From: Monocercomonoides exilis PA203
Lineage: Eukaryota > Protista > Preaxostyla
DNA: 64,000 nt
NCBI GenBank assembly: GCA_001643675.2
Contig: LSRY02000001.1
Coordinates: 2,170,001 to 2,234,000 of the forward strand
Direction: 5' to 3'
Of the stretch, positions 21,059-63,396 are shown piece by piece; position 1 is the stretch's first letter; each line of letters begins with the position of its first letter. The notes under the pieces are model-generated. The model did not search any database and was not told the origin of the DNA. It saw only the letters and a program-made list of their open reading frames with translations. Made by a program: the position numbers and the translations under genes.

Positions 21059-24000
21059 TCAAAGCACCACATTAATCCCTTTCAGCAAACCAATCACCTC
21101 ATCCAATGTTGGCCTGTCATTTGGCTCATCTGCCCACATTTTCTCCATCACCTCAATCAACTCTTCTCCTTCGATTCCTTCTGTAAGCGGTCGCACCCCA
21201 TCTCTCATCATCTCCTGCGCTTCTTCTGGATCACATTCGCTCAAGGGCACTTCCCCTGTTGTCATTTCATGCAGAATCAGTCCAAGTGTGAAAACAACTA
21301 CCTGTTCAATTCCGTCATCTTCATCTCCCTCTTCTGGTGCACTCCATCGCTTCATTTCTTCCTTCTGCTTCTCGTGCTCTAATTCCTCTGTCAATACGTA
21401 GATTTCATTTTCGTTTCCTTCCTCAACAAAGATTGAATTCGGACATAATTGTTTTCCCATCATTTCCACTCTTTCGTCTCCAACAGATATCAAATGCTCA
21501 AACAGCTCTGCCACTGCCAAAACCACTTCCTTCCCATCAACAACATCCATCGCTCTTGTTCCCAGCGTGAAATTACCTTGCACTGAATGAATCACCGAAT
21601 GCAATGTTTTGATGTTCTTTTTCTCCTTTTCTCGAAATGGCTTCTTTGCTGATATTACGTTGAATGAATGAGATTGAGATACCAATGAAACAGAATCATT
21701 CTCGGAAAATGGCAATGGAAAATCCAAATCTGGAAGATCATTTTCATTCAGTATTTCATCGTTCATTGACGGAGGCTCTGGAAGATCTTCATCGTTGTCA
21801 ATGAGAAGAGGAATTTGGCTCGTCATCCCCTCCAGTAATGTCGATGGCATTTCACTCATCTCAAAGCTCCCTCCATTATTTTCCCTTTTCCTTTCCATCT
21901 TCCCCATTATCTCCTCGTTTTCTAATCTCTCTTTTTCAACTTTCTTTTCCACTTCCTTCAGTTTCCTTTGCAAAAGCACAGCAACCACAACAATCACAAA
22001 TAACAGAATTATTACAATAGCAATACATCCAATAAATGCAACCAGACTCCATTCAATTTTATCCTCTCCTTTTAACAGTATTTCATCGCCCTTTGGAGGA
22101 GTGATGCTTGCATTCTTTAAAATGAATGAATTTGTTGATGAAGGAGATTCTGCATCTCCAAACAAAATATACACGCTCACTTCCATTTCATTTCCACAAC
22201 TGCTGATTGCATCTTTTGCCACGCACCCTTCGACTTCTCTTTCTGATAAAAATCCATTTGAATCAAAATTGTGTTTTTCAATATCTTTCTCTTCTCCTTT
22301 CCTCTTCACAACTGCAAATGACAGATTGCATGGAACAAGAAGCATCCCTTTGAATGTTAGCTTCATTCTATGTCTCTTCTTTTGCCTCCACACCCTCCAA
22401 CACAGGAATGAAGAATGATGAATCCCTTTCTGAAACAATCCCCTCAAAACTGCACCCTTCATTCAACATCCAAAGTGATGAATTTGGCAAAACTCCATCT
22501 CCCCCTTTCAAGCTGGAAATGGTCAATGACGCTGAATCTGAACAAACGATGTTTCTTCTCATTGATGGTTATCCTTCAATCAATGGATTGTTGTTCAAAA
22601 ACTCCCCTTTCTCAATCGTCACATCTCCAGTAGACACTGACAATCCACCTGATGAAGCATTCGAAATAATCACATCCTTCATCACCAATGAAGAATTCGT
22701 TGAGAGGACAAGTGATCCATTCCATTTGCATATTTCTTCAAAATTATTATTTCTCTCGCTTTCACTTTCATTCGCAATTACTCCAATAAATCGACACAAA
22801 TCCATCGAAACATCCTTTGTATTGCTTATCTCCATAATGCTTCCTTTGCTTGACAGAGAATCACAGTTTGAACAGGAACAGTTTGAAAGTGTTGTTTGAG
22901 CTGAAGTTGAAGAAGCTGAAAGAACAGAAGCTCCTTCTGAATTTCTCGAACAGTTGTTGAATGAGGAGATTCCAATAGAAACTGTTCCTGATGACAAATC
23001 GTTTATCACAATGATGCAACCTTCAGACCATTTCACTCCATCTGCAGATACTCCATTAAATACAACACTTCCACATTGTCCAATCTCAAATACATTTGTT
23101 GCTGATTCAATTTGTTCCAGTTTCATATTTGTAATATTTATCTCATCTACATTTAACAAAAATGAAGGCTTCTTGAATGAAAACATTGATATTGAGCAGT
23201 TGTCAACATGAAGAATTCCGTTTTCGATGCTCAACAATGTTGAATTGAGAACAATAGATTCAATGCTTTCTGATTGGCCAACAGATGAAAAATCAACAAA
23301 TGAAAGAGAAAGCTGGCCACATGCTTCGTGAATGATTGAATTGCCTGAATATGAAAACAATTTCCCAAAATTGAATTTTAATCTTTCAATCCGAACGTTA
23401 TCTGATGTTGTGATCAGATTTCCCTCGTTGGCTATTGTTGAGTTCAGATATACCATTGCAGCTGAGGGAGATTGCAATGAGCGGATGGTCACATCAAGAA
23501 CATCACATTCCCCAACAATTTCCGTTTGCCCCAAGATCAGTATCTGTGAGTACAGAGATGGAATGATGTGCTGCACTCCAAAGCTCAGTGAGTGGCATGG
23601 TGTGTCCAATTCTCCACATTGCTTACTGTCTGCGTGATTGTCTGCAGTCATAGACACAAATATCGTCTCGCTCTGATATTTCACAACCCTCAGCAGAAGA
23701 TCTTCTTCATCCAGAAAGGAATCTGTTGTGCAGCCCCATATTGCCAGCTCCTTCACAAAAGGTGATCTGAAATCCAATAAGAATTGCTCTTCAACAATTT
23801 GCGATTCGACTGAGCGGCATCTTACATACACATCTCTCCCTCTGAATGCAGAGTTGTCTCGGAATGTGATATTCGACAGAACAAAACTCAGAGGCTTATC
23901 AGCTGTCGAGGTGCATTCCAGAAACAGCCACCCACCTCTTCCTGCAGTCGAGCAGAAGCACTCTGAAATCTTGCAAAATGAGCACTCAAACTTTCCTCCC

Positions 24001-27000
24001 TCATTCAACTCACAAAACATCCCTCCTCCCTTTCCACACTTCAACCCTCCACATCTCTTCGTCGTTGTGTTTCGAATCACCATTTTCAATGGCGCATCAT
24101 TCTCATTTCGAATGATCGAGATGTTTTCTGTCTTGTTCTGGGTGACTTCTTCGAACAAACTCCACTCAATATTAATGCTTTTTTCTCCTTCATTGCTCCC
24201 TCTCTTCTCTCCAGCTGATCCCTTTGACATCCTCAATCCACTTGCTCCCTCCACCTCAATATTCTTCATCGTCAGATTTTTCGCATTCAGCACTGTTGTT
24301 GACAACACAGAAATAACATCCTGCGAAAAGCTCAACAATTGCATCGTCACCAATTCCAGCACAACTGTCCCTCCATCTGCTTTGATCAGCCCATAATCTG
24401 TCAATTCTTCTCTCTCATCCCCCTTTTTGGTGAATGAGCAGTCTTTCACAGTCAACAATCCCTCACTTGAGCCAACATGCATCAAATAATACACTCCACT
24501 CATGAATGATGAAGGAATCACAAACTTGATCAATTCAAAATTGGTAATGCCAGAAATCTTCATTGCTGCTCCTTCTGCTCCTTCTGCTCCTTCAAGCGAT
24601 GAGACACATTCCAATGAGCACATGCTGCTCTCATCCGATTTCACTGATATTCCACTCACATCAACACTCTTCTGAAGATACCCTTTTCCAATGATGCTGA
24701 CATTCATTTTATTTCCTTCTGCCAGTCTTCTCAACGAATGATCCATCGACAGACAAGGATAATCCGAGAATCCACACACACACACATCACAACCTTCGCT
24801 CCCAATAAATATCTCTGACCCAATCGCTCGCCAGAAATTGACCAGCGGAATGGCATTCGTTGTGTCACTCCCATCAAAGCCTCTCAGGGAATTCAATGAA
24901 ATACCATCCAGATGCCCAGATACAAATGGAAGAGAGGTGTTTGTGATGCTCTTTGTCAAGTTTGGTGATTCAACAAACAGGTCATTTCCATATTTTGCAG
25001 CATTTGGCTTGTCTGCCTCAAAAACAGGGGATGAGATCACAAATGAAGAATCATCATCAATCAATTTCAGCGCCATCCCTCCCCCAAACCCAATCTTCCG
25101 TTCTTCTGCTGGCGCTGTGCATCCTGTAAATGTGCAAGAAATAACATTCATTTGAATGCTCCCTTTCAACTGAGCATCAATGGCCCCTCCTCTGCTTCCA
25201 TCACCAGCCACAGAGCATCCATCAAAAACACACTCTTCAATATTTATTTGTGTGTTTGTATTTTCATCAAAGTTGTTGTCAATGCTCACACACCCTCCAT
25301 TTCCAGCTGCTCTTTCGATTTTTGTGAAATTGCTGTTCGTCATGTTCAACCATAGAGTGCTCATTGACTCGGTATTTGTGCTGCTCCCTCTCAACCAGAT
25401 CAGCGGATTTCTCCTCAAATCAATTGATGAAGCTGAGAATTTGTCGATTAACAGGATCCCTGACTCAACAGACAAGAACAGAATTGTCAATTCTGATGAT
25501 GGATTTTGAAGAGAAAGCGAACATTGAGACAGAGTTATTGAAGAAGAAGAAGAAGAAGAAATGAAAGTGGAGTGAAGAGGAAGGGAAGAAGGAAGAGAGA
25601 AGATAAGTTTTGATAATTCCGTTTCAACACTTGCTGTTATCATAGATGAATTGGATGTTTCACTTGAATCAGAGACTGTCCAACCACTTTGATCATTATT
25701 TCCTTTGACTTCATGTTTCTGTCCAGCAAAGTCCAATTCATCACTCATCATAATCATTCCATTTACGACAACTTTCTTTGTTCCTGTTTGTCTTGTGAGG
25801 GAGTGCTTCATTGTCAAACAAGGGAATTGGACAATTCCACAGTGTGAGTGATCAGATGCCTCAGAATTGCTCACATATATTTCTTCTGGTGTGGGGAGGA
25901 GATAGATGCACAGAGGGATAGCCACACTGTTGTTTCCGTTGTCATATCCTCTCACCTTCTCAACAGAATCCAATGAATCTGTCACACATGTGATGTTTTC
26001 TGATTTTGCTGTTTCTTCCAGATTTGGTGAAATAACAAAAATATCTCTTCCCCATTTGGCTGTGTTTGTGCCAAACGAAGAGGATATCAGGAAATTGGGA
26101 TTTTCATTCAACAATCGAAGAAGGATTCCTCCTCCAAATCCATATGTTGCAGAGCAATAGCACCCATCAAAATTACCTCCTTTCACTTTCACTTCATTTC
26201 CATTCCCAACACACAGCATCATCGATCCCCCATCAGTCGATGTTCTGCTTCCACATCCTTCAAAAGTGCAACAATTCACATCAATGTTGGACTTGTCATT
26301 CGAAAACGACATCACTGCTACTCCGCTCATTGTTCTCTCAATCCCATCAAAACCACACTCTGAAAGTGCCAATGAAATCTCATTTGTTGAAGAAAGCGAA
26401 AACAGTGAATTTCTGGAAATTGTCTTTGCCCAGCTCACATGTTCCATCTGAAACATCCCATTCTGAACATTGATCAGTTCTGTCGAAAATGCTGTTTCTG
26501 TTGATTGTCCGCTCCCAAAAGATATGTTCAGTCTGCTGATCCTCATTCCTCCTGCTCCACTTATCTCAAACAGTCTAGACCCACAATTATTCGGATGAGC
26601 CGAGTCATGCACAAGAATAAAGTCTCTGGCAGTCAATGCTCCTGTCGAGACTGAAAATAGAGACAGCCCAGATGCTTCAAATTCTGTATGAATTGCTGTG
26701 CTCATATTGCTTTGGCCATAAACAGTAAAAGTATTGACTCCACAATCAAAACTATTTGTTTCGATGATCGTTCCTGAAGAAACTTCCACATTGGGAACCA
26801 AGTCTGGAATGAGTTGTGTAAGGCAACGGCTGATCGTGCTGCATGGATAAGATTCATAAATTCCACATGCATATGTGTCGTTGCCTTTTGGTTGCGAATC
26901 AGTTGATGAGACAAATCTCACATTTCCAAAATCATTGCGAAGCCAATCACTCCGATAGGTATTAGAATTATAATTAGTACAAACTCTGTATGATGTTTGG

Positions 27001-28496
27001 CCGGTTGAATAGCAGGTTGGATCAATATTATTTGAGGTTGAACCATGAAGCAACATATCGTAGCCACACCTTGTGCCTGTGTTATTGTGGAAATAACAAT
27101 AATAAAACAAAACTCTTTTGTTATTTGCATTCAGCAACAAGCAAACTGCTCCTCCCGAAAGCGAAGAGCAATGATAAAATAAACAATTTGAGAATATAAT
27201 TTGAATTGTTCCATCCCAATGAATAATTGCGCCTCCGCAAGAAGTTGAAGAATTTGACGCTTGACAAAATTTGAAGAATGAGTTAATAACGCATTTTTTT
27301 TGTTTTTGAGCAGTTTCTTGATAAAAACCAATTCCTCCTCCGTCATTGGCAGCAGAACAGTTATTAAATAAGCAATCGTCAACCATTGGCTGAACATAAA
27401 TTGTTTCAAACTGAATCCCTCCTCCACCCCAATCTGAAGAACCATATGTAACACATTGATCAAATGTTGAATGATGCACAATGCATTCAGCAATTTTCAA
27501 AGCATATATTCCTCCCCCTCTTGTGGATGAAGCATTGCATCTTGTGAATGAAGAATTCTCAACCGTGAGAATGGCACTTTTGTTATCATGAACAAACAGC
27601 GCTCCTCCTTGTGGTGCTGTGCAATCTTCCCATTCACACAACGAAAATGATTGGCTTTCTGTTGTGTTCAGTTTTTCTTTTTTCTCAAGAGCATTCGTTT
27701 CTCTTCTCCCGAAGTTCGTTGTTGCGTTTTTGCAGATGAATTCATGTGAAGAATAGGATCCGCTCGAAATCCCTCCTTCAAAGACATTCACACACGAATA
27801 AATGAGTGCATTTTCAATTGAACTTCGAAAACATGAATGTTCCACAAAATGATCGCTATTCGTGTTATATTTCACAGACATGTTCCTGAAGGCACAATTA
27901 ATGATCTGTTCACTTTTGCTCTTTCCTGATAACAGGAAATTGTCTGAAGATGAGATAGCCAGGTCTGTGATGATGGAGTTGCTCAAAATAACAGAATTGG
28001 AATCATCAGATGAAAATATGAGACTGGAAGGGTTAATACTCTTTTGGGGTATCAATGTCATGTTTGTGAGGCAGATTGACCCGATATTCAAATGAAAAGG
28101 AGATTCCGACTTTTGGAAGGAAATGCAGGAATCCAACACCACATTCGATTTATCTGTAATTAGAATAAATGGCGAGGAAGAATATTCGACTGCCACATTT
28201 TTCAGTCCAACTGAAGAATTGGAAAAGCACAAAAATGAATAAATCGCTGTGCATGTTCCTGCCTTCCATCTGTTCATTCCTGATACTTTTCTCTGTTCTA
28301 AAAAATAATTATTATTGTCATTTGTGGGAAATTGTGCATCATTTGAGTTATCTTGACCGAAATAAATACAGTTATATTTAAAAGTTATCTTTGAAAAAAT
28401 ACCTTCATTCTTTAATGTGGCTGTTCCACAGATGACTTGAGATTTAGATGTCTCTGCCAAAATCAGATATGCTAAAAGGAACAAATGCACCCTCAT
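21059..28496 (-). CDS. Giant surface receptor (signal peptide, beta-helix-like ectodomain, TM, kinase-like C-lobe) split by a nonsense codon and a frameshift
   Basis: 1975-aa ORF with signal peptide MRVHLFLLAYLILAETS, GGG-I/F..C..GG repeats and recurring D...CG....PC modules. The TAA at 22569-22571 is followed in frame by PSMRRNIVCS. A frameshift at ~22370 leads to MKLTFKG..., the TM WSLVAFIGCIAIVIILLFVIVVVAVLL, then VFTLGLILHEMTTGEVP...MWADEPNDRPTL. Confidence 0.8.
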
Positions 28497-30878: not shown

Positions 30879-33071
30879 ATGAGCAAAATAATTGAAAGCA
30901 ACACTGACTCGCAAAAAGCGAATTGTGAACTCTCTTTAAAGGACGAGAAAGGAAGAACAAAAGCAATGAGATGGATTATTGAAAAAAAAACTGAACCACC
31001 AATAGAAATAAGACACGATGTTACAATTTCGGATAATGAAGGAAATGCTATGTCAATGTTGTGGATTGGATTTACACATACGGAACCTCCAGAATGGATG
31101 AGACACGATATTGCACTTTGCAACAATTACGGATGGACAATGGCCATGAATTGGATTCAGTTTGTTCAAACAGAACCACCAGAATGGATGAGACACGATA
31201 TTGCACTTTGCAACAATTACGGATGGACAATGGCCATGAATTGGATTCAGTTTGTTCAAACAGAACCACCAGAATGGATGAGACACGATATTGCACTTTG
31301 CAACAATTACGGATGGACAATGGCCATGAATTGGATTCAGTTTGTTCAAACAGAACCACCAGAATGGATGAGACACGATATTGCACTTTGCAACAATTAC
31401 GGATGGACAATGGCGATGCTGTGGATTAGATATGTTGGAACTGATCCACCAGAATGGATGAAACACGAGATTACTCTTGCAAATAAGAACGGATGGACAA
31501 TGGCGATGATATGGATAGAGAATGTCAAAACGGACACTCCTAAGTGGATGAGGCATGACATTACACTTGGCAATAAAGACGGAAACACAATGGCGATGCT
31601 ATGGATTTTAAAAGTTAAAACAGAGCCTCCAGAATGGATGAGACACGATATTGCACTTTACAACAATTACGGATGGACAATGGCCATGAAGTGGATCAAT
31701 AATGTGAAGACAGAACCACCAGAATGGATGAGACACGATATTGCACTTTGCAACAATTACGGATGGACAATGGCCATGAAGTGGATCAATAATGTGAAGA
31801 CAGAACCACCAGAATGGATGAGACACGATATTGCACTTTGCAACAATAACGGATGGACAATGGCTATGCTATGGATTAATCATGTGAAGACAGAACCACC
31901 AGAATGGATGAGACACGATATCACACTTTGCAACAATAACGGATGGACAATGGCCATGCTGTGGATTCAAGAAATCCAAACAGACCCACCAGAATGGATG
32001 AGACACGATATTGCACTTTGCAACAATTACGGATGGACAATGGCCATGAAGTGGATCAATAATGTGAAGACAGAACCACCAGAATGGATGAGACACGATA
32101 TCACACTTTGCAACAATAACGGATGGACAATGGCCATGCTGTGGATTCAAGAAATCCAAACAGACCCACCAGAATGGATGAGGCATGATATCACACTTGA
32201 CAATAAAGGCGGATGGACACTGGCCATGATATGGATTTATCATGTCAAAACAGAACCACCGGAGTGGATGAGACACGATATCATACTTGACAGCAATAAC
32301 GGATGGACAATGGCCATTCTATGGATTTATCATGTGAAAACAGAACCACCGGAGTGGATGAGACACGACAATGAGCTTGCAGATAAATATGGAAAAACAA
32401 TGGCGATGAATTGGATTGAGGAAGTTAAAACAGAACCACCACTATGGATGATAATGGATAGCACACAAGGCACTAAGGAAGGGAGGACGTTGTCGATGAA
32501 GTGGATTGAAGAGAAAAAAACGGAACCTCCAGACTGGATGAGACATAGAAACACTTTTGTCAATTCGAAAGGACAGACAATGGCTATGAAGTGGATTTAT
32601 TACGTTAAAACAGAACCGCCAGAATGGATGAGACACAACATTGCCATTGGCGATAATGGAGGGAAAACAATGGCCATGTGTTGGATAAAGGAAATCAAAA
32701 CAGAACCACCTTTGTCAATAAGGCATGAAATAGCAAAAAAAGATAACAATGGCGAAACAATGGCGATGAAGTGGATTCAGTTTACTGAAACTGAACCGCC
32801 AGAATGGATGAGACATGACAATCGGGTTGCGGACAGGGATGGAAAAAGGATGGCAGATTATTGGGAAAGATATGTTGGGAATGAGATTCCAGAATGGATG
32901 AAGTGCGATGAATCAATTTCCGCTGATGAAGCTCTTGATGAAGCTGATGAGCCCGTTGAAGAACTTGATGATGAAGAAATGATAAAGACAATAAATTTGA
33001 TCAAAGAAAGTTTAAAGAAGTATCGGGGAAAAAGTGGAAAGAAAATGCGCTTGTTGATTAGGATTGAATAG
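30879..33071 (+). CDS. Intronless 730-aa tandem-repeat protein: 21 x 30-aa divergent ankyrin-like repeats (TEPPEWMRHD...NxxGWTMAMxWIxxVK)
   Basis: Open frame with exact 90-bp periodicity at 30990-32879, plus a partial N-cap repeat. (D/N)xxGxTxxM resembles the ankyrin hairpin and first helix. Acidic linker and basic C-terminal tail. Confidence 0.9.
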   Translation: MSKIIESNTDSQKANCELSLKDEKGRTKAMRWIIEKKTEPPIEIRHDVTISDNEGNAMSMLWIGFTHTEPPEWMRHDIALCNNYGWTMAMNWIQFVQTEPPEWMRHDIALCNNYGWTMAMNWIQFVQTEPPEWMRHDIALCNNYGWTMAMNWIQFVQTEPPEWMRHDIALCNNYGWTMAMLWIRYVGTDPPEWMKHEITLANKNGWTMAMIWIENVKTDTPKWMRHDITLGNKDGNTMAMLWILKVKTEPPEWMRHDIALYNNYGWTMAMKWINNVKTEPPEWMRHDIALCNNYGWTMAMKWINNVKTEPPEWMRHDIALCNNNGWTMAMLWINHVKTEPPEWMRHDITLCNNNGWTMAMLWIQEIQTDPPEWMRHDIALCNNYGWTMAMKWINNVKTEPPEWMRHDITLCNNNGWTMAMLWIQEIQTDPPEWMRHDITLDNKGGWTLAMIWIYHVKTEPPEWMRHDIILDSNNGWTMAILWIYHVKTEPPEWMRHDNELADKYGKTMAMNWIEEVKTEPPLWMIMDSTQGTKEGRTLSMKWIEEKKTEPPDWMRHRNTFVNSKGQTMAMKWIYYVKTEPPEWMRHNIAIGDNGGKTMAMCWIKEIKTEPPLSIRHEIAKKDNNGETMAMKWIQFTETEPPEWMRHDNRVADRDGKRMADYWERYVGNEIPEWMKCDESISADEALDEADEPVEELDDEEMIKTINLIKESLKKYRGKSGKKMRLLIRIE
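30990..32879 (+). repeat. Coding 90-bp tandem array (21 units)
   Basis: No indels between units. ~31086-31413 is perfect at the nucleotide level with period 90. Confidence 0.95.
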
Positions 33072-47466: not shown

Positions 47467-49892
47467 AATTTTATATATTTTATATTTTTTATTTTTATTC
47501 CCCTCCCTCCCCTTCCCTCCCTCTTTCCCCCTCCTTCAAAAAAGGATGTGTGCTCTACGAGATGATCACACTGAACCGCCCGTTCGATGCCCCCTCGATG
47601 CAAGGCCTGCACCAGCGTGTGCGCTCCGGCCGAGTCGCCCCGATTCCGAATTGCTTCTCCTCCGACCTGGCACAGCTCGTCAGCGCCATCCTCGTCGTTG
47701 ACCCGGCTCACCGCCCCACAATGGACCAGATCATGGCGATGCCTCGCGTCGTCAGCCACTTCGACTGCCTGCCCGCTGCGAAGCTGCAGAGGAGGATCAG
47801 CGGAGCACCTGCTTCTTCTTCTTCTTCTTCTTCTTCAGCCACTCCATCTTCGTCTTCTTCGCTTTCGTCGCTTTCTTCAATTTCTTCGATTTCTTCTGAC
47901 AGGCAAAGCTATTCTTCTGTTGTGGGTGTTGGGCCGAGCGGGAGTGTCGTAGCTCAGTTCGGCGGGGTGGGAATTCGGAGTGGAATGGGCGGAGGAATCG
48001 GAGGAAGGGCCGGAGGAGGAGGAATTTACGGTGCAAACCCATCTCAGCCGTCTGCTGCCCCTCCGTTTGGCTTTGAAGGGCGAGGCGGGCGAGGAAGATA
48101 TGGCCAAGTTTCGGGTGTGCCAGGCTTGTCGGAGCAGTCGAGATACGACTCACGGTTCGATGGGAAAGGAGGGAGATATGGAGAAGGAGGAGAAGGAGGA
48201 GGAGGAGGAGGATATGACAGCCACACAGGCACAACCACCACAAGCACATCCACTTACTCGACAGAGCACAATTTCTCTCTCTATCCCGACGGCTCCCCCC
48301 GCTTCCAGCTGGCGGGGCTGCTGAAGATGCCGAAGTTGAAGTCGAAGCGGAAGGATCTTGTGCTTCCCCCGCCGAAATACGGCGAAACGCTTCGGCTGGC
48401 TGCACAGTCAGACTCGGCGGTGGGGATGCAGAGCTATGCAAGTGGCGGAGGAGGAATGGGAGGAATGGGAGAAGGAGGTGGAGGAGGAGGAGGAAGCAAT
48501 TCACTCGCTCCTACTTCGTATTCAGACCCGATTTATTCTTCACGGACTGACAGTGATGTGCCGGTTTCGGAGCCAGCGAGAGGAGGCGGAGGAGGAAGTG
48601 GAGGAGGAGGAGGAATGATGGGAAGAGGAGGAAGAGGAGGTGGTGGTGGAATGATGGGGCAACATGGAAGATTGCCACCGGTGGGAGGAGTGGGAAGAGG
48701 CGCGGGGGGAAGAGAAGGGCAGTCGCCGTATGTTCAGATGGCGAACAGAAGAGCAAATGGAAGAGGAGGAAACGGAGGAGGAGGAGGAGGAGGAGGAGGT
48801 TATGCCCCTGTTTCTACTCCGTACCGACCAGAAAGAGGAGAAAGAGGAGAAATGGGAGGAAAAGGAAGAGAGGAAGGGAAAAGAAGCGATGTTCATTTGC
48901 CTCCGCTGAGGGCGAGTGATGAAAGAAGAGGAGGAGAAAGGGGAGGAGGGTATGCAAAGGAAGGGCAGAGAGGGGGAAGAGGATATGGCAGGAACAAGCA
49001 GAATCCGTATGCTGACGATGAATTTGAGGACGACGAGCAATTGGAAGACCGAAGAATAGCAGCAGCAGCAGAGGCGGCGATTGCGGTGGATGCGAGAAGG
49101 AGGATGAAAGGAGGAGAAGGAGGAAGAGAAGGAGGGAGAGGAGGAAGAGAAGGAGGAGGAATGGGAATGGGAATGGGAAGAGGAGGAGGAAGAGAAAGAG
49201 GAGGAGTAGGAGGAGAAGCGGTTAGAACACCTTATGATGATGACGAGTTTGAAGATCTGGCAGAGCAGGAAGATGCAGCGATGGACGAGGAGAGGAGGAG
49301 GATGGAGACTTCGATTGAGGAAGAGATCAATCGAAGAGAAAGAGAAGCGAGGAGAGAAAGGAGGAGGTACGACAGATTGGCAGAGGAAGAGGAGGAAGAG
49401 GAAGAGGTTATGAACAGATATCCATTGAGAGGAGGAGGAGGAGGAGGAAGAGGAAGTGGATATGGAAGAGGAGGAGTGGGACAACAACTTCAACCTCAGG
49501 CGCAACAAGGGTTTGTCAGAGGCGCAGTGGCAAAGCACCCGCCGATTGCGTTTCCTGCTTCGAAGCAGCAGCAAAGGTCGATTTCAGTGGCCGAGTCGAG
49601 GCTTCCTCCTTTGATTGCGTCGCATTCGTCGCAGGCGCAGTTCTCGAACCCTTATCCGGGGCCTTCTAGTTCTTCTTCTTCTTCTTCTTCTTCTTCTTCT
49701 GTTTCTGTTTCTGGAGGAGGAGGAAGAGAAGGAGGAGGAGGAGTGAATGAGATTCCAGCAGCAGGGATAAGATCTTCATCAAGATTTCAGTCAGAATATT
49801 CGTCGCACTTTTTCGCTGCTCCGACTGCTTCGCCGAAAGCAGCGGCGCCTTTGCCAGGGAATGTTGGGGTGAGGGTGAGGCCGTTTAGATGA
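46470..49892 (+). CDS. NEK: NIMA-related Ser/Thr kinase with long Gly/Arg-rich disordered tail (5 exons)
   Basis: Motifs LGKGSYG, YALKEI, LNEIRILAS, HRDIKSANVFL, KIGDLGVAK, IGTPYYLCPE and KSDVWSLGC. In-frame GT-AG introns at 46529-46591, 46625-46736, 46785-46854 and 47295-47544. Confidence 0.93.
47397..47462. repeat. (TTTA)n microsatellite in NEK intron 4
   Basis: Seen directly. Confidence 0.95.
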
Positions 49893-56730: not shown

Positions 56731-58003
56731 ATGTCCTCATCAAATAAATATAAATTCAATATACATAACTGTATGTTTCAATTTAATTATCATGGAGCAC
56801 CAAGATGTTCTTTGATGCAGAATGGTTTTTTGTGGATTGGAGTTGATGAAAGTCTGTTTGTATATGAATCAGTCCACGGCTCTCTTGTTAAAGAGATAAA
56901 GATGAACAGCATTGTTACGAACCTGTGCTTTAATTCTTTTTCATTTACTATTTGGATTGGATTGTCAAATGGAACTATAAAAACAATTAATGCAAACACG
57001 TTTGAATTTGCGCAAGAAATCAACTTTAAAAGTGGATGCGAAATAAGACAAATGATATGCCCACGCATAATTCCTCCATTTTTTGAAGCAACTGGAGGGA
57101 TTCTTATTTTGGATTCAAATGATATAATTTCTCTTGTGGATGCAGTTTTATTGAATACTTTGCAATCGATAAGTTTTAAAAAGATATCGTCAATGAAACT
57201 TATTTCGCCAGAGATCCTCGAAGTCCGATGTTATGCAGAAAGCATATTATATTTTTCACTATTCGATCTTTCTCTTCCATTTGCTCGAGTAGAACTGCCT
57301 TTAGATATTGAATTTATCTATTCATTTGCAAGTCTCAATTGCACAGAAAAGGGTTTGCCAAGAGGTAAATGCAAAGATGCTTCTATTCAGGCAGAAGTTA
57401 ATAAGTCATATGATTTGACATTTATTGTACAAAAAAGAAAAGGAATATTGGAAATTTGGAAGAAAGAACAACCATTAACTCCACCTTCTCTATCAAAATC
57501 AAAGAAAAAGATTCAATTGCCAATGCTCAAAATTCGTGACACACACTTTAGATTCATTGAGCAAATTCTGGACATTAATGTTAGGAAAATAATAATGGAT
57601 CATAAAAACGATGTTTTGTTTGAAGAAATGAAGGAAATACCAACATTTCCTCGCGTTCTCTGCGGAGTAGCCAAAAGCCATGTCATTTTTCTGAGAGAGA
57701 GAGATTTTTCCGTTTTGTTCAGTTTTGACATGAAAAAGGAAACTTCTCCATGTCAAAATTCTTCGTTGGTTAATACGCAACCTCAAATCAGTAGTTCTTC
57801 TGGTGTTTCGAATGAAACAAGAAAATCACTCACTTCATCATCATTTATTTCATCATCATTATCTTCTTCTTCTCCTTCTTCTCCTTCTTCCCCGCCTTCA
57901 TCATCAACACCTTTAACTTCTTCTTCATCAAATTCTTCTTCCTCTTCCTCTTCCTCTTCCTCTTCCCTCTCCTCTTCCTCTTCCTCCTCTTCCCCCTTTT
58001 CTC

Positions 58004-58034
<31 letters not shown>

Positions 58035-61000
58035 CCCCTCTTCCCCCTCTCCCCCCTCTTCCCCCTCTTCTTCTTCTTCACTTCAGCACTCAATATCAAT
58101 ATCACCATCTCCATTTCATTCACTTATTTGCACTGAAAATTCTTTCGTAGCAATCTTCTCAAAAAATGGCATATGCAATTTATTTGCCTTTTTTCCGAAA
58201 GAAATGATGAAGAATTCTTCAAATTCTTCCTTCTCCTCCTCCTCTTCTTATTCATCTTCCTCTTCTTCCTCTTCCTCTCCTTCTTTTTCTCTTTCTTTTT
58301 CTCCTTCTTCTCCAATGAAAAAGACAGAAATATCACAAATTTCACAAACTTTACGTTCTCCTTTCAAAAAAAGAGAAAATTTCCAATTGAAACAACCTTT
58401 TTCTTCCTCTTCCTCTTCTTCTTCTCTTTCTTCTCCTTCCTCTTCTTCTTCTTCTTCCTCTTCCTCTTCTTCATATCCTTCTTCTTCTTCTCCTGATAAC
58501 TTGTTCAATTCTTGTCTCTCTTCAGCCACTCAAAAATTAGAAAAAACGAAGACGAAACAAGAAAATGAGCAAATTTCATCAGAAAACAATGAAAAAATGG
58601 AAAAAATTTCTTCCTCTTCTTTTTCCTCTTCTTCTTTTCCTTCTTTCTCTTCTCCTTCTTCTTCTTGTTCTTCATTATCATCTCTTTCTTCTCAAAAGTT
58701 CTTAACTTCTTCTTCTTCTTCTCTTTCTTCTTCTCGTAAATGTTCTCTGAATAATCCAGCTTTAATGTTATGGTCAATTCAATCAGAAGAAGAAGAAAGA
58801 AGAAGAAGAAGAAAAAGAGAAAATGAAGAAAATGAAGAAGAAGAAGAAGAAAGAGGAGGAAGAGGAGGAGAAGAAAGAGAAAAAGAAAGAGGAGGAAGAG
58901 AAAATGGAATGAAAACAAACATGTTTTTGAACAAAAACTATCAAAAAAATGAATTTTCTTCTGTCTTAAGCTCAAATTCTTCAGTTTCTGATAATAATTT
59001 GCCTTCTTTTTCACCTTCTTCTTCTCTTTCTGCTTTTCCTTCTTCTTCTTCTTCTTCTTCATTTTCTCCATTTTCCCCTTCTTCTTCTTCCTCTTCTTCT
59101 TCTAATTCTTCTTCTCATTTTCCGCTTTCATCATCATCATCTTCTTCTTCTTCTTTCTCTTCTTCTTCCTCCTCTTCCTCCTCTTCTTTTCCTTTATCTT
59201 CTTCCTCTTCCTCTTCCTCTTCTCCTTCTTCTCTCATCATTCTCCCTTCTCCTTCTTCTGCCTCAGAAGAAAGCGTTTCCTCGTTCGGCTTCAAAAGCTG
59301 GCTGAAAACTCGAACTTCTTCCGAATTTGCGAAGAAAATTGAAAATGACATGGAAAAATGGAGAAGAAATGGAGAAAAAATGGAGAAAAATGGAAAAAAT
59401 GGAAAAATTGAGGTTAATTCTTCATTTTCTCCTTCTCTTTCTTCTCCTTCTCATTCTTCGTTTTCTTTTTCTTTTTCTTCTTCTTCATCATCCTCTTCCT
59501 CCTCCTCTTATTCTTCTCAGCTTTTCTCTCTTTTGGCTGAATTTGAGAGGGAAAAAAGCGAAAGAAGGAGAAAAAAAGAGGAAGAAGTTCGTCTGATGGA
59601 AGAAAATGGAATTAAAATTGGATCTTTTGAAGCAGAAAACAAAGAAAATGAAGAGAAAAATGAAGAAAATAAAGAGAAATTTAAAGAAAATGATGAAAAA
59701 ATTGAAGAAAATGACGATTTTTATGATAAATGCATTGAAAATGAAAGGAAAAAAGAGGAAAAAGAGGAAAAAGAGGAAAAGGAAGAAGAAGAAGAAAGAA
59801 GAGAAGGAAGAGAAGAAAAAGAAGAAGAAAATTATCAAAAAAATTTCAACATTTTTTTATCACCAAAAAATGAATTTTTTTCATCAATTCGAACTTTTTC
59901 ACCTTCAAAAAGAGAAAAAGAAGGGAAAGAAGGGAAAGAAAGAAGAGGAGAAGAAGAGGGAAAAGAGGAAATGAATGGAAAACACAACAATTTCAAAGAA
60001 GAAGAAGAAGAAGAAGAAGAAGAAAATGAAAAATTTGATAGTTTAGACGGAGAAGAATATGATCAGCAACGTGAAAGTTCAGCAAAAGTTCGATTTTTAA
60101 TGAGAAAACTGGAAGAATCAATGGAAAATGAAGGAGAAAATGAGAATGAAAGGAAAGAGGAGGAGGAGGAGGAGAAGAAGAAGAAGAAAGGGAAGGAGAA
60201 GGAGGAGAAAGGGAAGGAGAAGGAGGAGGAAATAAAAGAGAGGGAGAAGGAAGAGAAGGAAGAAGAAGAAGAAGAAGAGGAAGAAGAAGAGAAGGAAGAA
60301 GAAGAAGAAGAAGACGTGAAAGAGGAAAAAGAAGAAGTTGAAAGGGAGAAAGAAGAGAGAGAAGGAAATATAGAAACATTAACAGATGAAGAAAAGGAGA
60401 ACAGTAATAATCAAATAGAGAAAGAAGAACAAAAAGAGCAAAAAAAATCTTTCTCAGAAATGGATGACAAATCAGAAAATGAAAAAAGAAGGAAAAATTT
60501 GAAGGAAGTAAATGAAGAAAATGAAGAAAATGAAGAAGAAGGAAAAGAAAAAGAGGAAAAAAGAAAAGGAAAAGAAGGAGAAGGAGAAGGAGAAGGAGAA
60601 GGAGAAGGAGGAGGAGGAGGAGGAGGAGAAGGAGGAGGAGAAGGAGAAAAAGAAGGAGAAGGAGAAGAAGGAGAGGGAGAGGAGAAAAAAGAAAGCGAAA
60701 AAGAAAGCGAAGAAGAAAATAAACAAAACGAAGACAAAAAGAAAGAAGAAAGAGAAAGAGAAAGAAGAGAAAAAGAGAAGATTAAAAGAATAATGAAAGG
60801 AATTAAAATAAAAGAGAAGGAAGATGAAGAAACAAAAAGCAAAAGAAAGGAAAGAATGAAAATTGTATTGCAGTTGATTGAGAAGAGAAGGAGAGAAAGA
60901 GAAAAGGAAAGAGAAAGAATAAAGAGAGAAAGAGAAAGAGAAGGAGAAGGAGAAAGAATTATTGAGGAGGAGGAGGAAGAAGAAGAAAAAGCAGGATGGA

Positions 61001-63396
61001 AGAAGAAAGAAGAAGAAATGAATGAAAATCTGTTAAATTTTCAGAGTGAAAGAGAAGAGGATAATTTGATAGCAACGAAGGATATAGAAGAAATATTAGC
61101 ATTAGCTTCGAATGGAGAAGATGGAATGGAAATGAAAGGGGAAGAAGAAGAGGAGAAGGAAGAAGAAGAAGAAGAAGAAGGAGAAGATAGAAATAAAAGA
61201 GAGGGAGAAGAGGAGGAGGAAGAAGAATGTGAAGAAGGAGAGAAAAACGAGAAAGATGAAAGACAGGAGGATGAAAATAGAAATGAAGATGAGGAATTGA
61301 AAAAGAGAAAAGAAGCAATAGAATTGAAAGAAGACGATGAAGAAGAAAGAAACGAAAACAAGAAAGAAATGACTGATAAAAGCGAAGATGAGGAAGATTT
61401 GAGGGAGAAAGAAGAGGAGAAAGATGAAGAAGAAAAGGAAGAAGAAGAAGAAAGCATTGAAGAAAATGGACTAATTGAAGAAGATGAAGCACACGAGGAA
61501 AGAAAAATTAAAGAAGAAACAAAAGCAGTAGAAGAAGAGAAAAAAGAAAAAGGAATCAGTAAGGAAGAAGAAGAAGAAGAAGAAAAGAGTTTTGAAATAA
61601 ATTCAATTGAAGAAAATAGAAAGGAGATTGACGATTTGAAATGTGAGGTGAAAGAGGAAGAGGAAGAGGAAGAGGAAGGAAAAGAGGAAGAGAAAAACGA
61701 GGAAGACGAGAAAAATGCTTATGAAGAAAAGGATGAAGAATTTGAGACTCAAGAGAAAGGAAAGAACAAGGAGGAAGACAAGAAAGCAATTGATTTTTAT
61801 GCTGAAGAAGCAAATGTCAGTGAGAATTCAACCAAAATTGATAACAAAGATTCAATCAATTTAAAGAAAGAAAGTTCAAAAAACACAAAAACCACAAAAA
61901 CAACAAAAACTAATGAAAAAATTCAAAAACATTCAGAAGCGGAGCATTCTGCTTCTTCATTCTATTCATCTTTTTACTCTCCAACAAAAAAAGGAGTTCA
62001 AAATAACTCGATAAAATCTCAAGAAGTTTGCAAGGGAAATCAAAAGGGTTCTTTCAGAAGAAGTTTAAATGAAGCTTCTCTTTCAGATTTATCTCCATCT
62101 TCGTCATCTTCATCATCATTGCATTCTTCTGCTTCCCAGTTGGATAACCAAAAAAAGAATTCTTTTCAATTTTCATCGCAATTTGCACAAACACCAAAAA
62201 AAGCATCAAATATTCCATTTAAAGCCAAAGAAGAGCAAAGAAAAGGGGTTAATTCTCCATCTTCACAGAGCAAAACCACAAAATTTTCAGATAATTCTGC
62301 ATGTTCATCTACAGAGAAGCAGCATGCAATTGGGCAAGCTTCAAGTCATTCCTCTCATTCTGATGTGTCTCCTCTTCGTCTCTCTCCAACTGTGCTTGGA
62401 ATGGAGAAAAGATTGCAATTTGAAAAAATAACAGAAGAGCTGGAGAATATCAAGCAGGAGAAGGAGTGTTTGGAGGAAGAAACAGAAAAGCTGATGTTTC
62501 AAAACAGTGCAAATGATTTTTCTGATGAAAAAGAACACAAAAAATTGGATAAAAGTTGTGTGAATGATGGTGATGATGCTTCAAATGAAAATTTATCAAA
62601 ACAAGAAAAAAGCAAGAAAATTGTAAGGAATGTGTATGTGAGAGGAGAAAGAACAGCAAAGCCCCGTTTTTTGTCTACTTCGGCCAGATCTTTTTCTTCT
62701 CCTTTAGCAACACCTCAGAAACTGTCTGCATCAGTTTCTTCTTTATCTTCTTCCTCTTCTTCTTTGTGTTTCCAACTGCAAATGAATCGTTTACCAATGG
62801 ATGCTTCAGAAGATAAAGACAAACATAAGTTATCATCATCATCATCATCATCATCGCCATCCAAGTTAATGAAGCATCATGCAAAACAATTCATGGGGGC
62901 AAAGCAGAAAAGCGAAGGAGAAGAATGCGGAAACCAGATGAAATCAAATAGAAGCCCACCGAAAAGAACAGAACCAACATCTTCAGCATCAATGAGGAGG
63001 ATGATGAACAACAATGCAACTCTTGTGTCAGCAAAAAATTCACAAAATTTCACACAAATATTAAAAGATAAAGCGGATGGTCCATCAACAGCAATAAATG
63101 TGACAAAAAGCGGAAAACATTGTGAGATAATTTCCTGTGAGAATCAAGAAAAAGAAAAAGAGAAAGAGAAAGAAAAAAATGAATCTTTGAAACCCGATAC
63201 AAAAAAAGAGGAAGAACTTGATGTTGTTAGCGATATTGACATCTCTTCAGAAATTAAATATCTCGACTTGAAACTCAGTGAACATGCGTTGTCTATCAAA
63301 TCGCATGAAGAAGAAGCTGAGAAACAAATGAATCTTTTTCAGCAATTGAAATTAAATTTGTGCTTGCAAAAAGAAAAGACTTCGAACACAACATAA
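56731..63396 (+). CDS. 2221-aa protein: possible degenerate beta-propeller N-terminus, poly-Ser and Glu/Lys-rich regions, C-terminal coiled coil
   Basis: Uninterrupted 6.7-kb ORF. LWIGVD and IWIGLSNGTIKTIN resemble WD40-like blades. The rest is mostly low complexity. Confidence 0.75.

Follow-up and report, generated by a model that had tools for sequence, protein, structure and literature searches.

The closest described relatives of the element considered here are the ankyrin-repeat proteins, in which units of about 33 residues, each with a hairpin and two antiparallel helices, stack into a curved solenoid; the concave groove of that solenoid, made of the hairpin tips and one face of the inner helices, binds partner proteins or extended peptides. 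The element itself is an open reading frame (ORF) for 730 amino acids at positions 30879-33071 (+ strand) of a 64,000-nucleotide stretch of the genome of the amitochondriate eukaryote Monocercomonoides exilis PA203 (contig LSRY02000001.1, positions 2,170,001 to 2,234,000 of the forward strand; this whole stretch is called the window below). It is built of 30-residue repeats in which a first reading, made from the letters of the sequence only (the sequence-only reading), had seen a candidate modular recognition code. We consider it likely that the product is instead a shortened and divergent ankyrin-type protein made of repeats only, which would serve as a cytosolic scaffold or adaptor for protein-protein interactions with its specificity set in the groove. 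As far as structure models go, the fold is of the ankyrin type, repeat for repeat, and is not a new one.

With canonical ankyrin repeats (PF00023, PF12796 and relatives) the family to which this protein belongs shares the D/N-x-x-G-x-T hairpin, the inner helix, the curved solenoid and a one-on-one superposition of units, and its variable residues appear to fall in the ankyrin manner at the hairpin tip and on the exposed face of the inner helix. It differs in having a period of 30 instead of 33 residues, T-M-A-M where ankyrins have TPLH, a one-turn outer helix after Pro-Pro, a core of Trp, Met and Ile and a T-E-P-P-E-W-M-R-H-D block, and in that no Pfam Ank model sees the M. exilis members tested. 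The 24-repeat domains of ankyrin-B and ankyrin-R (PDB 4rlv and 1n11) are likewise very long unbroken arrays (24 units, versus 22 here) and are the best match by Foldseek (E = 1e-22) and by VIA (Z = 19.7 over 600 residues); the long inner groove of these ankyrins binds extended peptides. However, sequence identity to them is only ~10%, the superhelical pitch differs, since the global root mean square deviation (rmsd) is large (22 Å), and the 730-residue protein consists of repeats only, without spectrin-binding or death domains. Designed ankyrin repeat proteins (DARPins), which are among the top structural matches, also combine a constant scaffold with diversification at a few surface sites in each repeat, and we take positions 29, 1, 2, 4, 12 and 13 of the family to correspond to the randomised DARPin positions 33, 2, 3, 5, 13 and 14. 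Unlike DARPins, the family is natural and not selected in vitro, its position 9 varies as well, albeit within chemical limits, and the ratio of the proportions of non-synonymous and synonymous differences (pN/pS) reaches at most ~0.9, which gives no evidence of selection for diversity. Ankyrin-RING E3 ligases (plant XB3/XBAT, MIB1) and viral ankyrin adaptors resemble those relatives of the family outside M. exilis that carry a C-terminal RING; unlike these, neither the 730-residue protein nor the M. exilis members examined have a RING or F-box-like domain. TALE, PUF and PPR proteins are similar in that they, too, repeat a unit of constant length in tandem and vary at few residues within it, but the fold of the family is different, there is no small alphabet of residues, the 730-residue protein is acidic, and no member of these three groups occurs among the structural matches.

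The coding sequence is complete and intronless, running from ATG to stop without interruption (730 codons plus the stop codon in the ORF list; C1:2200879-2203068, with 0 internal stops, in the list of genome matches). Within it 22 copies of the anchor W-[I/E] follow one another every 30 residues exactly, without insertions or deletions, which gives 20 good repeats, a degenerate N-terminal repeat and a degenerate C-terminal repeat. The sequence-only reading had counted 21 repeats of 30 residues; the exact spacing that it reported stands, and the count becomes 22 with the first and last units degenerate. A hydrophilic leader without signal peptide (amino acids 1-22, 30879..30944, all coordinates being on the + strand), to which AlphaFold2 assigns a predicted local distance difference test score (pLDDT) <50, is followed by repeat 1, a divergent N-terminal cap placed by the 30-residue register (amino acids 23-52, 30945..31034). 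Repeats 2-21 (amino acids 53-652, 31035..32834) are 20 units of exactly 30 residues, delimited by the register, by secondary structure assignment with DSSP and by superposition on ankyrins. Repeat 22 (amino acids 653-682, 32835..32924) is a degenerate C-terminal cap conserved in the sub-family described below, and the protein ends in a tail (amino acids 683-730, 32925..33068) in which an acidic linker is followed by a predicted amphipathic helix (amino acids 698-719), which AlphaFold2 places with low confidence, and by a short basic/hydrophobic end. The tail has no Pfam match; it is common to a sub-family of paralogs, as it aligns with the tails of L003, L007 and L033-L036. Neither a signal peptide nor a membrane segment was found by hydropathy, the N-terminus being hydrophilic and the maximal Kyte-Doolittle value 0.78 (19 residues), so that the earlier statement that signal peptide, membrane segment and intron are all lacking is borne out. 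Trp and Met make up 7.5% and 8.6% of the protein, respectively, its isoelectric point (pI) is 5.46 and its net charge is -26.

At the DNA level Tandem Repeats Finder reports a period of 90 nucleotides (15.3 copies, score 1494) together with a higher-order period of 270 nucleotides. In the identity matrix repeats 3-5 (31125..31394) are 100% identical, with an exact run of 236 nucleotides at a lag of 90, as are repeats 9-10 (31665..31844), to both of which repeat 13 is 98% identical. Since these units are identical in DNA, part of the apparent repeat pattern is attributable to very recent duplication; the identical units represent either such a duplication or a collapse/expansion artefact of the nanopore-based assembly, on which the exact repeat number depends. 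Several ORFs in other frames or on the other strand (31053-31556, 31608-31826 and 31869-32276 on the - strand, 31061-31429 on the + strand) were rejected as genes, being repetitive by-products of the 90-nucleotide period.

The conservation of individual positions was analysed by positional entropy on 384 units from 15 paralogous ORFs (362 of them unique), in a register (positions 1-30) that begins two residues ahead of the conserved Gly. Over the 362 unique repeats, entropy exceeds 3 bits at positions 2, 4, 9, 12, 13 and 29 only, and is below 0.6 bits at T5, M8, W10, I11, P18, P19, W21, M22 and H24, with R23 at 0.60; the T-E-P-P-E-W-M-R-H-D block is almost invariant, and G3 and T5 are kept in 86% and 97% of units, respectively. 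This agrees with the near-invariant scaffold and few variable positions described from the sequence. The residues listed there as flanking WI were also correct, namely LGF, NQF (three times), LRY, IEN, LLK, KNN (twice), LNH, LQE and KNN in repeats 2-13 and LQE, IYH, LYH, NEE, KEE, KYY, CKE and KQF in repeats 14-21, and the hairpin variants CNNY, CNNN, ANKN and DNKG are present in the repeats. Read in the ankyrin register, the D-x-x-G-x-T hairpin spans positions 30-1-2-3-4-5 and the inner helix positions 6-13; the ankyrin P-L-H is replaced by M-A-M and the invariant His lies elsewhere, at H24. Positions 9, 12 and 13 share one helical face because of their spacing (i, i+3, i+4), A7, W10, I11 and V14 on the opposite face are invariant, and positions 29, 1, 2 and 4 flank the hairpin tip. 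Variation is concentrated in two patches, and it is only the half of the unit with hairpin and first helix that is ankyrin-like in sequence, both as first described. In 130 units from relatives outside M. exilis the same positions vary, while G3, T5, A7, M8, W10, I11, P18-P19, H24 and D25 are fixed. Position 9, which precedes WI, does vary, but within limits: 70% of its residues are hydrophobic or aromatic and none is acidic. It is more probably half-buried than free to set specificity. Taken together, register and helical periodicity would place the variable positions along the concave binding groove of an ankyrin.

The full-length protein, modelled by AlphaFold2 with a paralog alignment, has a mean pLDDT of 87.5, with low confidence only in the first 16 residues and in the tail, and a six-repeat fragment with an alignment of 45 rows reaches a pLDDT of 96.9 and a predicted template modelling (TM) score of 0.90. 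In each modelled unit DSSP recognizes an inner helix of 8-9 residues (positions 6-13/14), followed by the T-E-P-P linker and an outer helix of one turn (the three residues E20-W21-M22); between position 29 and position 5 of the following unit the chain is extended and hairpin-like. In the model, then, the Pro/Trp-rich segment does not replace the second half of the repeat, as had been supposed, and is itself the outer helix, shortened to one turn. When the model was compared with the PDB using Foldseek, the best 50 matches were all ankyrin proteins, headed by the 24 repeats of AnkB, and VIA-align gave Z-scores of 13-20 on these ankyrin chains; for the ANK domain of Notch1, about six model repeats superpose on about six ANK repeats (rmsd 2.8 Å over 172 residues). 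A search independent of Foldseek, against 48,161 representative PDB chains, likewise returned ankyrin proteins or DARPins for all of the best 50 (Z = 10.3-13.6; rmsd 2.6-6.5 Å, mostly ~3-4 Å; 132-180 of 180 residues). By shape, the TM score to Ank clusters of the ESM Atlas is 0.70-0.79, and the Atlas's own independent model of the exact 730-residue sequence scores 0.67-0.81. Of the two structural hallmarks of ankyrins, the predicted models have the hairpin/helix solenoid that superposes on solved domains; the repeat of ~33 residues with two antiparallel helices is not seen, as the period is 30 and the outer helix is a turn of three residues. We find the ankyrin fold persuasive, because the match lists contain only ankyrins, the units map one to one and two predictors agree.

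A bridge to ankyrins is also found at the sequence level, through intermediate relatives. The search with a repeat profile that the sequence-only reading had proposed was carried out with a three-repeat family profile against 1.84 billion representatives, and led to 230 clusters at E<=0.001, of which 144 have E<=1e-10; all of these outside relatives are metagenomic proteins. Among the best 150 of the 230, Ank_2 matches 13, Ank_5 matches 5 and Ank_4 matches 2 (E<=0.01). One relative, P0026, exceeded the Pfam gathering score of Ank_2, with 30.3 bits against a cut-off of 27.3, at residues 220-266 and hence within the match of the family profile (196-275); its units look intermediate between the family and ankyrin consensus sequences. 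Because relatives thus bridge to Pfam Ank_2, the family is best placed as a far-diverged branch of the ankyrin superfamily and not as an unrelated solenoid.

The mechanism that we propose would work as follows. Each 30-residue unit would keep the ankyrin hairpin/loop D/N-x-x-G-x-T and the inner helix T-M-A-M-x-W-I-x-x, with the outer helix cut to a single turn (E-W-M) after the Pro-Pro kink and with Trp, Met and Ile in the core, and 22 such units would stack into a long curved solenoid resembling the 24-repeat domain of ankyrin-B. The varying residues of the hairpin tip (29, 1, 2 and 4), with those along one side of the inner helix (9, 12 and 13), would together form the groove for the partner, and diversity would arise from duplication, loss and reshuffling of whole units inside conserved caps, along with nearly unconstrained substitution in the groove. 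Binding of a protein or peptide, the identity of the binding face and the cytosolic location of the 730-residue protein are expectations of this reading; the anatomy of the repeats, the predicted fold, the bridge to ankyrins in sequence, the size of the family, the purifying selection on the scaffold and the way in which arrays change are results.

Several results weigh against this reading. No Pfam Ank model (PF00023, PF12796, PF13606, PF13637 or PF13857) matches the 730-residue protein (E<=1) or nine M. exilis paralogs (E<=0.1), and none of the 34 genome-wide matches of PF12796 (Ank_2) lies at a family locus. Searches of PDB sequences with phmmer and the three-repeat profile yielded nothing, or chance matches to titin and obscurin at E>0.1. 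An hhalign comparison of the family profile with 11 canonical ankyrin segments of the M. exilis genome was not significant (probability 0.85%), although its sole alignment puts D-x-x-G-x-T-M-A-M-x-W-I on D-x-x-G-x-T-P-L-H-x-A, in the expected register. In short, significant sequence similarity to ankyrins is lacking when the comparison is direct; a strong full-length match to a characterised ankyrin subfamily, which the sequence-only reading had named as a finding that would speak against it, was likewise absent by Pfam and by PDB sequence. The fold evidence consists of predicted models and not of a solved structure, a Z-score of ~13 is within the range about which the structure tool warns for repeat proteins, and the position of the variable residues in the groove is deduced from register and helical periodicity. 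Furthermore, Pfam finds neither a RING nor any other effector domain in the 730-residue protein; nor did a search of the M. exilis genome find a RING fused to the family, the two weak RING matches there belonging to non-family sequence. The Pfam matches DUF5624, YycE-like_C and DUF4926 were dismissed as repeat-summed noise, below or unrelated to the cut-offs.

The M. exilis PA203 nanopore assembly comprises 101 contigs and ~82.3 Mbp (PMC8767320). In our scan of these contigs (82,301,135 bases; 61 of 220 candidate matches scored) the 730-residue protein matches 147 places, which represent at least 51 loci, counted as distinct combinations of contig and open frame. Open frames at these loci code for 546-1661 amino acids, and a few loci contain stop codons. 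Clustering is strong, with at least 22 of the at least 51 loci on contig C80 (1.96 Mb). A degenerate DNA pattern for EPPEWMRH was found at 915 genomic sites, compared with 0 in the reversed control, and the genome therefore holds on the order of 2,000 repeat units. Paralogs have 15-36 detected units, nearly always spaced by 30. The nearest of them (L033, C1:2641761-2644214) has 25 units against 22 here; its leader is nearly identical (5 nucleotide differences over the first 156), its N-cap and C-cap units are identical at 30 and 29 of 30 residues, respectively, and the C-proximal units are common to both, whereas the interior is reshuffled. Since caps are fixed and interiors reshuffled, the arrays evolve through the gain, loss and exchange of entire units. 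Three other paralogs (L005:1003-3273, L011:1369-3819 and L015:1450-3540) begin with Met-Gly-Asn, and the 730-residue protein begins with MSK; some family members might be N-myristoylated and attached to a membrane, although by eye only one of the three Met-Gly-Asn starts fits the usual pattern. The main text of the two M. exilis genome papers (one being PMC8767320) does not mention the repeat family, and nothing relevant came out of a full-text literature search that combined Monocercomonoides with ankyrin. In these papers the largest family named is that of the tyrosine kinases, and expanded protein families are suspected to lie hidden among the unclassified repeats.

Selection was analysed per site across repeats and paralogs, as had also been suggested from the sequence, and gave pN/pS of ~0.1-0.2 for the scaffold and 0.6-0.9 for the variable positions. 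In nearest-neighbour unit pairs (pS 0.37), site-wise pN/pS is 0.02-0.1 in the scaffold and 0.67-0.9 at positions 2, 4, 9, 12, 13 and 29; in unit pairs binned by identity it is ~0.1 in the scaffold and 0.6-0.9 in the variable set. Over the seven repeats that are colinear with the nearest paralog, variable sites have a 4.3-fold excess of non-synonymous changes (Fisher P = 2e-4), with pN/pS of 0.84 there and 0.21 elsewhere. The scaffold is under strong purifying selection, which argues that the family genes are functional. Positive selection was sought in the three pairwise tests, and the pooled variable sites never rose above neutrality; values of pN/pS >1 at single sites were discarded as small-sample fluctuations. 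The groove positions are relaxed and close to unconstrained, and diversifying selection is not demonstrated by these pairwise tests, which are too crude to exclude it.

The relatives outside M. exilis raise an alternative that is compatible with an ankyrin-type fold and makes a stronger claim on the biology, namely that the family is a conflict-driven repertoire of diversified ankyrin-type adaptors, which would have been exchanged with large DNA viruses or have descended from them and would act in antagonism between host and virus or host and symbiont, for example by feeding targets to ubiquitin ligases. A word-indexed protein search found two relatives, both from one JGI metagenome and both ending in a RING finger, and a C-terminal RING finger is present in 13 of the best 150 relatives, one of which matches the RING_XB3-XBAT31 model; this suggests that elsewhere the array may be the substrate-binding module of ubiquitin ligases. 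Furthermore, some relatives lie on compact, AT-rich metagenome contigs with genes on one strand and few recognisable functions. One such contig (L031; ENA ERZ27247346, 1-9589, 9.6 kb, GC content 29%) carries at least eight family genes in tandem on one strand, 50-58% identical to the 730-residue protein and in several cases fused to an additional C-terminal domain of ~250 amino acids, which was not found in the M. exilis genome; another compact one-strand contig (L030) carries dNK and T5orf172. The large size and clustering of the M. exilis family and its shuffling of units would fit such a repertoire too. However, scans of IMG/VR with the family profile, P0022 and P0090 gave no confirmed relative, no viral hallmark gene was seen on the relatives' contigs, and one relative is on a plainly eukaryote-like contig (L032, with Rce1, NifU, an EF-hand protein and RPB10); in addition, pN/pS at the variable sites is not above 1 and no RING fusion was found in the M. 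exilis genome. We regard this alternative as unlikely. The viral connection is a lead and not a result, as the three IMG/VR scans were blank and the support comes from the gene arrangement on three metagenome contigs. It is equally doubtful, in our view, that the family is a cassette-shuffled natural repertoire of minimal ankyrin binders which this gut protist shares with large DNA viruses or other compact genomes and which is used for antagonistic recognition; were it so, the repertoire would, for instance, hand foreign or host proteins over to ubiquitin ligases and gain new specificities through duplication and reshuffling of units.

Less probable again is an independent, convergent alpha/loop solenoid that resembles ankyrins in predicted shape only and would be a truly new repeat family. 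In its favour are the absence of Pfam Ank matches in all ten M. exilis members tested and the non-significant hhalign comparison with the genome's own canonical ankyrins, together with a period, a second helix and a Trp/Met core that do not look like the ankyrin consensus. Against it, relatives found at E<=1e-10 are matched by Ank_2, Ank_4 and Ank_5 on the same residues, in one case above the gathering score, the register D/N-x-x-G-x-T-x-A/L-M/H is that of the ankyrin hairpin and first helix, and two independent predictors give a repeat-for-repeat superposition. The suggestion of an uncharacterised solenoid family thus survives in part: the family is a solenoid and is unannotated, having no match in Pfam, PDB sequences or the literature, but it is no new kind of solenoid.

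The code originally proposed, in which each repeat would read one base or residue through two or three positions in the manner of TALE, PUF or PPR proteins, with nucleic acid as the probable ligand, fares worse and is in our judgement very improbable. The strict, indel-free period and the confinement of variation to a few positions per repeat are what it would predict, and positions 12 and 13 do co-vary (mutual information z = 15). This covariation is accounted for by a few repeat subtypes (QF, EN, EY and AN) that have spread by unit duplication. On the other hand, 212 distinct triplets at positions 9, 12 and 13 occur among the 362 repeats, the commonest of them 10 times, so that there is no small specificity alphabet with one unit per base, and the position before WI is chemically restricted. 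Neither a basic surface for nucleic acid nor a matching fold was found: most paralogs are acidic or neutral (pI <7 in most), the variable positions are 3-24% basic, and TALE, PUF and PPR proteins take none of the best 50 structural places, all of which are held by ankyrins. A reading of nucleic acid in the TALE/PUF manner is therefore unlikely, the protein being acidic and having no small residue code. That the array is non-functional repetitive DNA (a satellite-like array or a decaying pseudogene family that happens to stay open) is the least credible explanation of all, for although identical 90-nucleotide units point to ongoing unequal exchange and a few family loci contain stop codons, synonymous divergence is 0.37-0.5 compared with 0.02-0.05 for non-synonymous divergence in the scaffold (pN/pS ~0.1), open frames of 600-1661 amino acids are found at more than 45 loci, and distinct cap repeats and the C-terminal tail are conserved.

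The rest of the window contains eIF2A, a tyrosine-kinase-like kinase and long intron-free ORFs, at a GC content of ~30-40%; scans of its 64,000 nucleotides for Rfam families and transfer RNAs found none. Among the long ORFs, one of 1975 amino acids (22569-28496, - strand) has no Pfam match, and one of 2221 amino acids (56731-63396, + strand) spans a region where purine skew is extreme (at 60001-62000, GC skew is 0.71 and AT skew is 0.66). A third, of 780 amino acids (47550-49892, + strand), also has no Pfam match and lies in an island of 54% GC with strong GC and AT skew, unlike its surroundings.

The family represents the ankyrin repeat in a new, shortened form, and is no new kind of recognition system. 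Its ~50-100 genes, with units numbering on the order of 2,000, make it a large family in a model amitochondriate eukaryote, and presumably its members are annotated as hypothetical, since they escape every standard domain model. Once it is recognized as ankyrin-type, the M. exilis genome appears far richer in ankyrins than the 34 matches of Ank_2 alone would indicate, and the family profile picks up 230 further unannotated metagenome clusters. A natural ankyrin repeat of 30 residues, with an outer helix of one turn and a Trp/Met core, would also be a useful minimal variant for the study of repeat-protein structure and for design.

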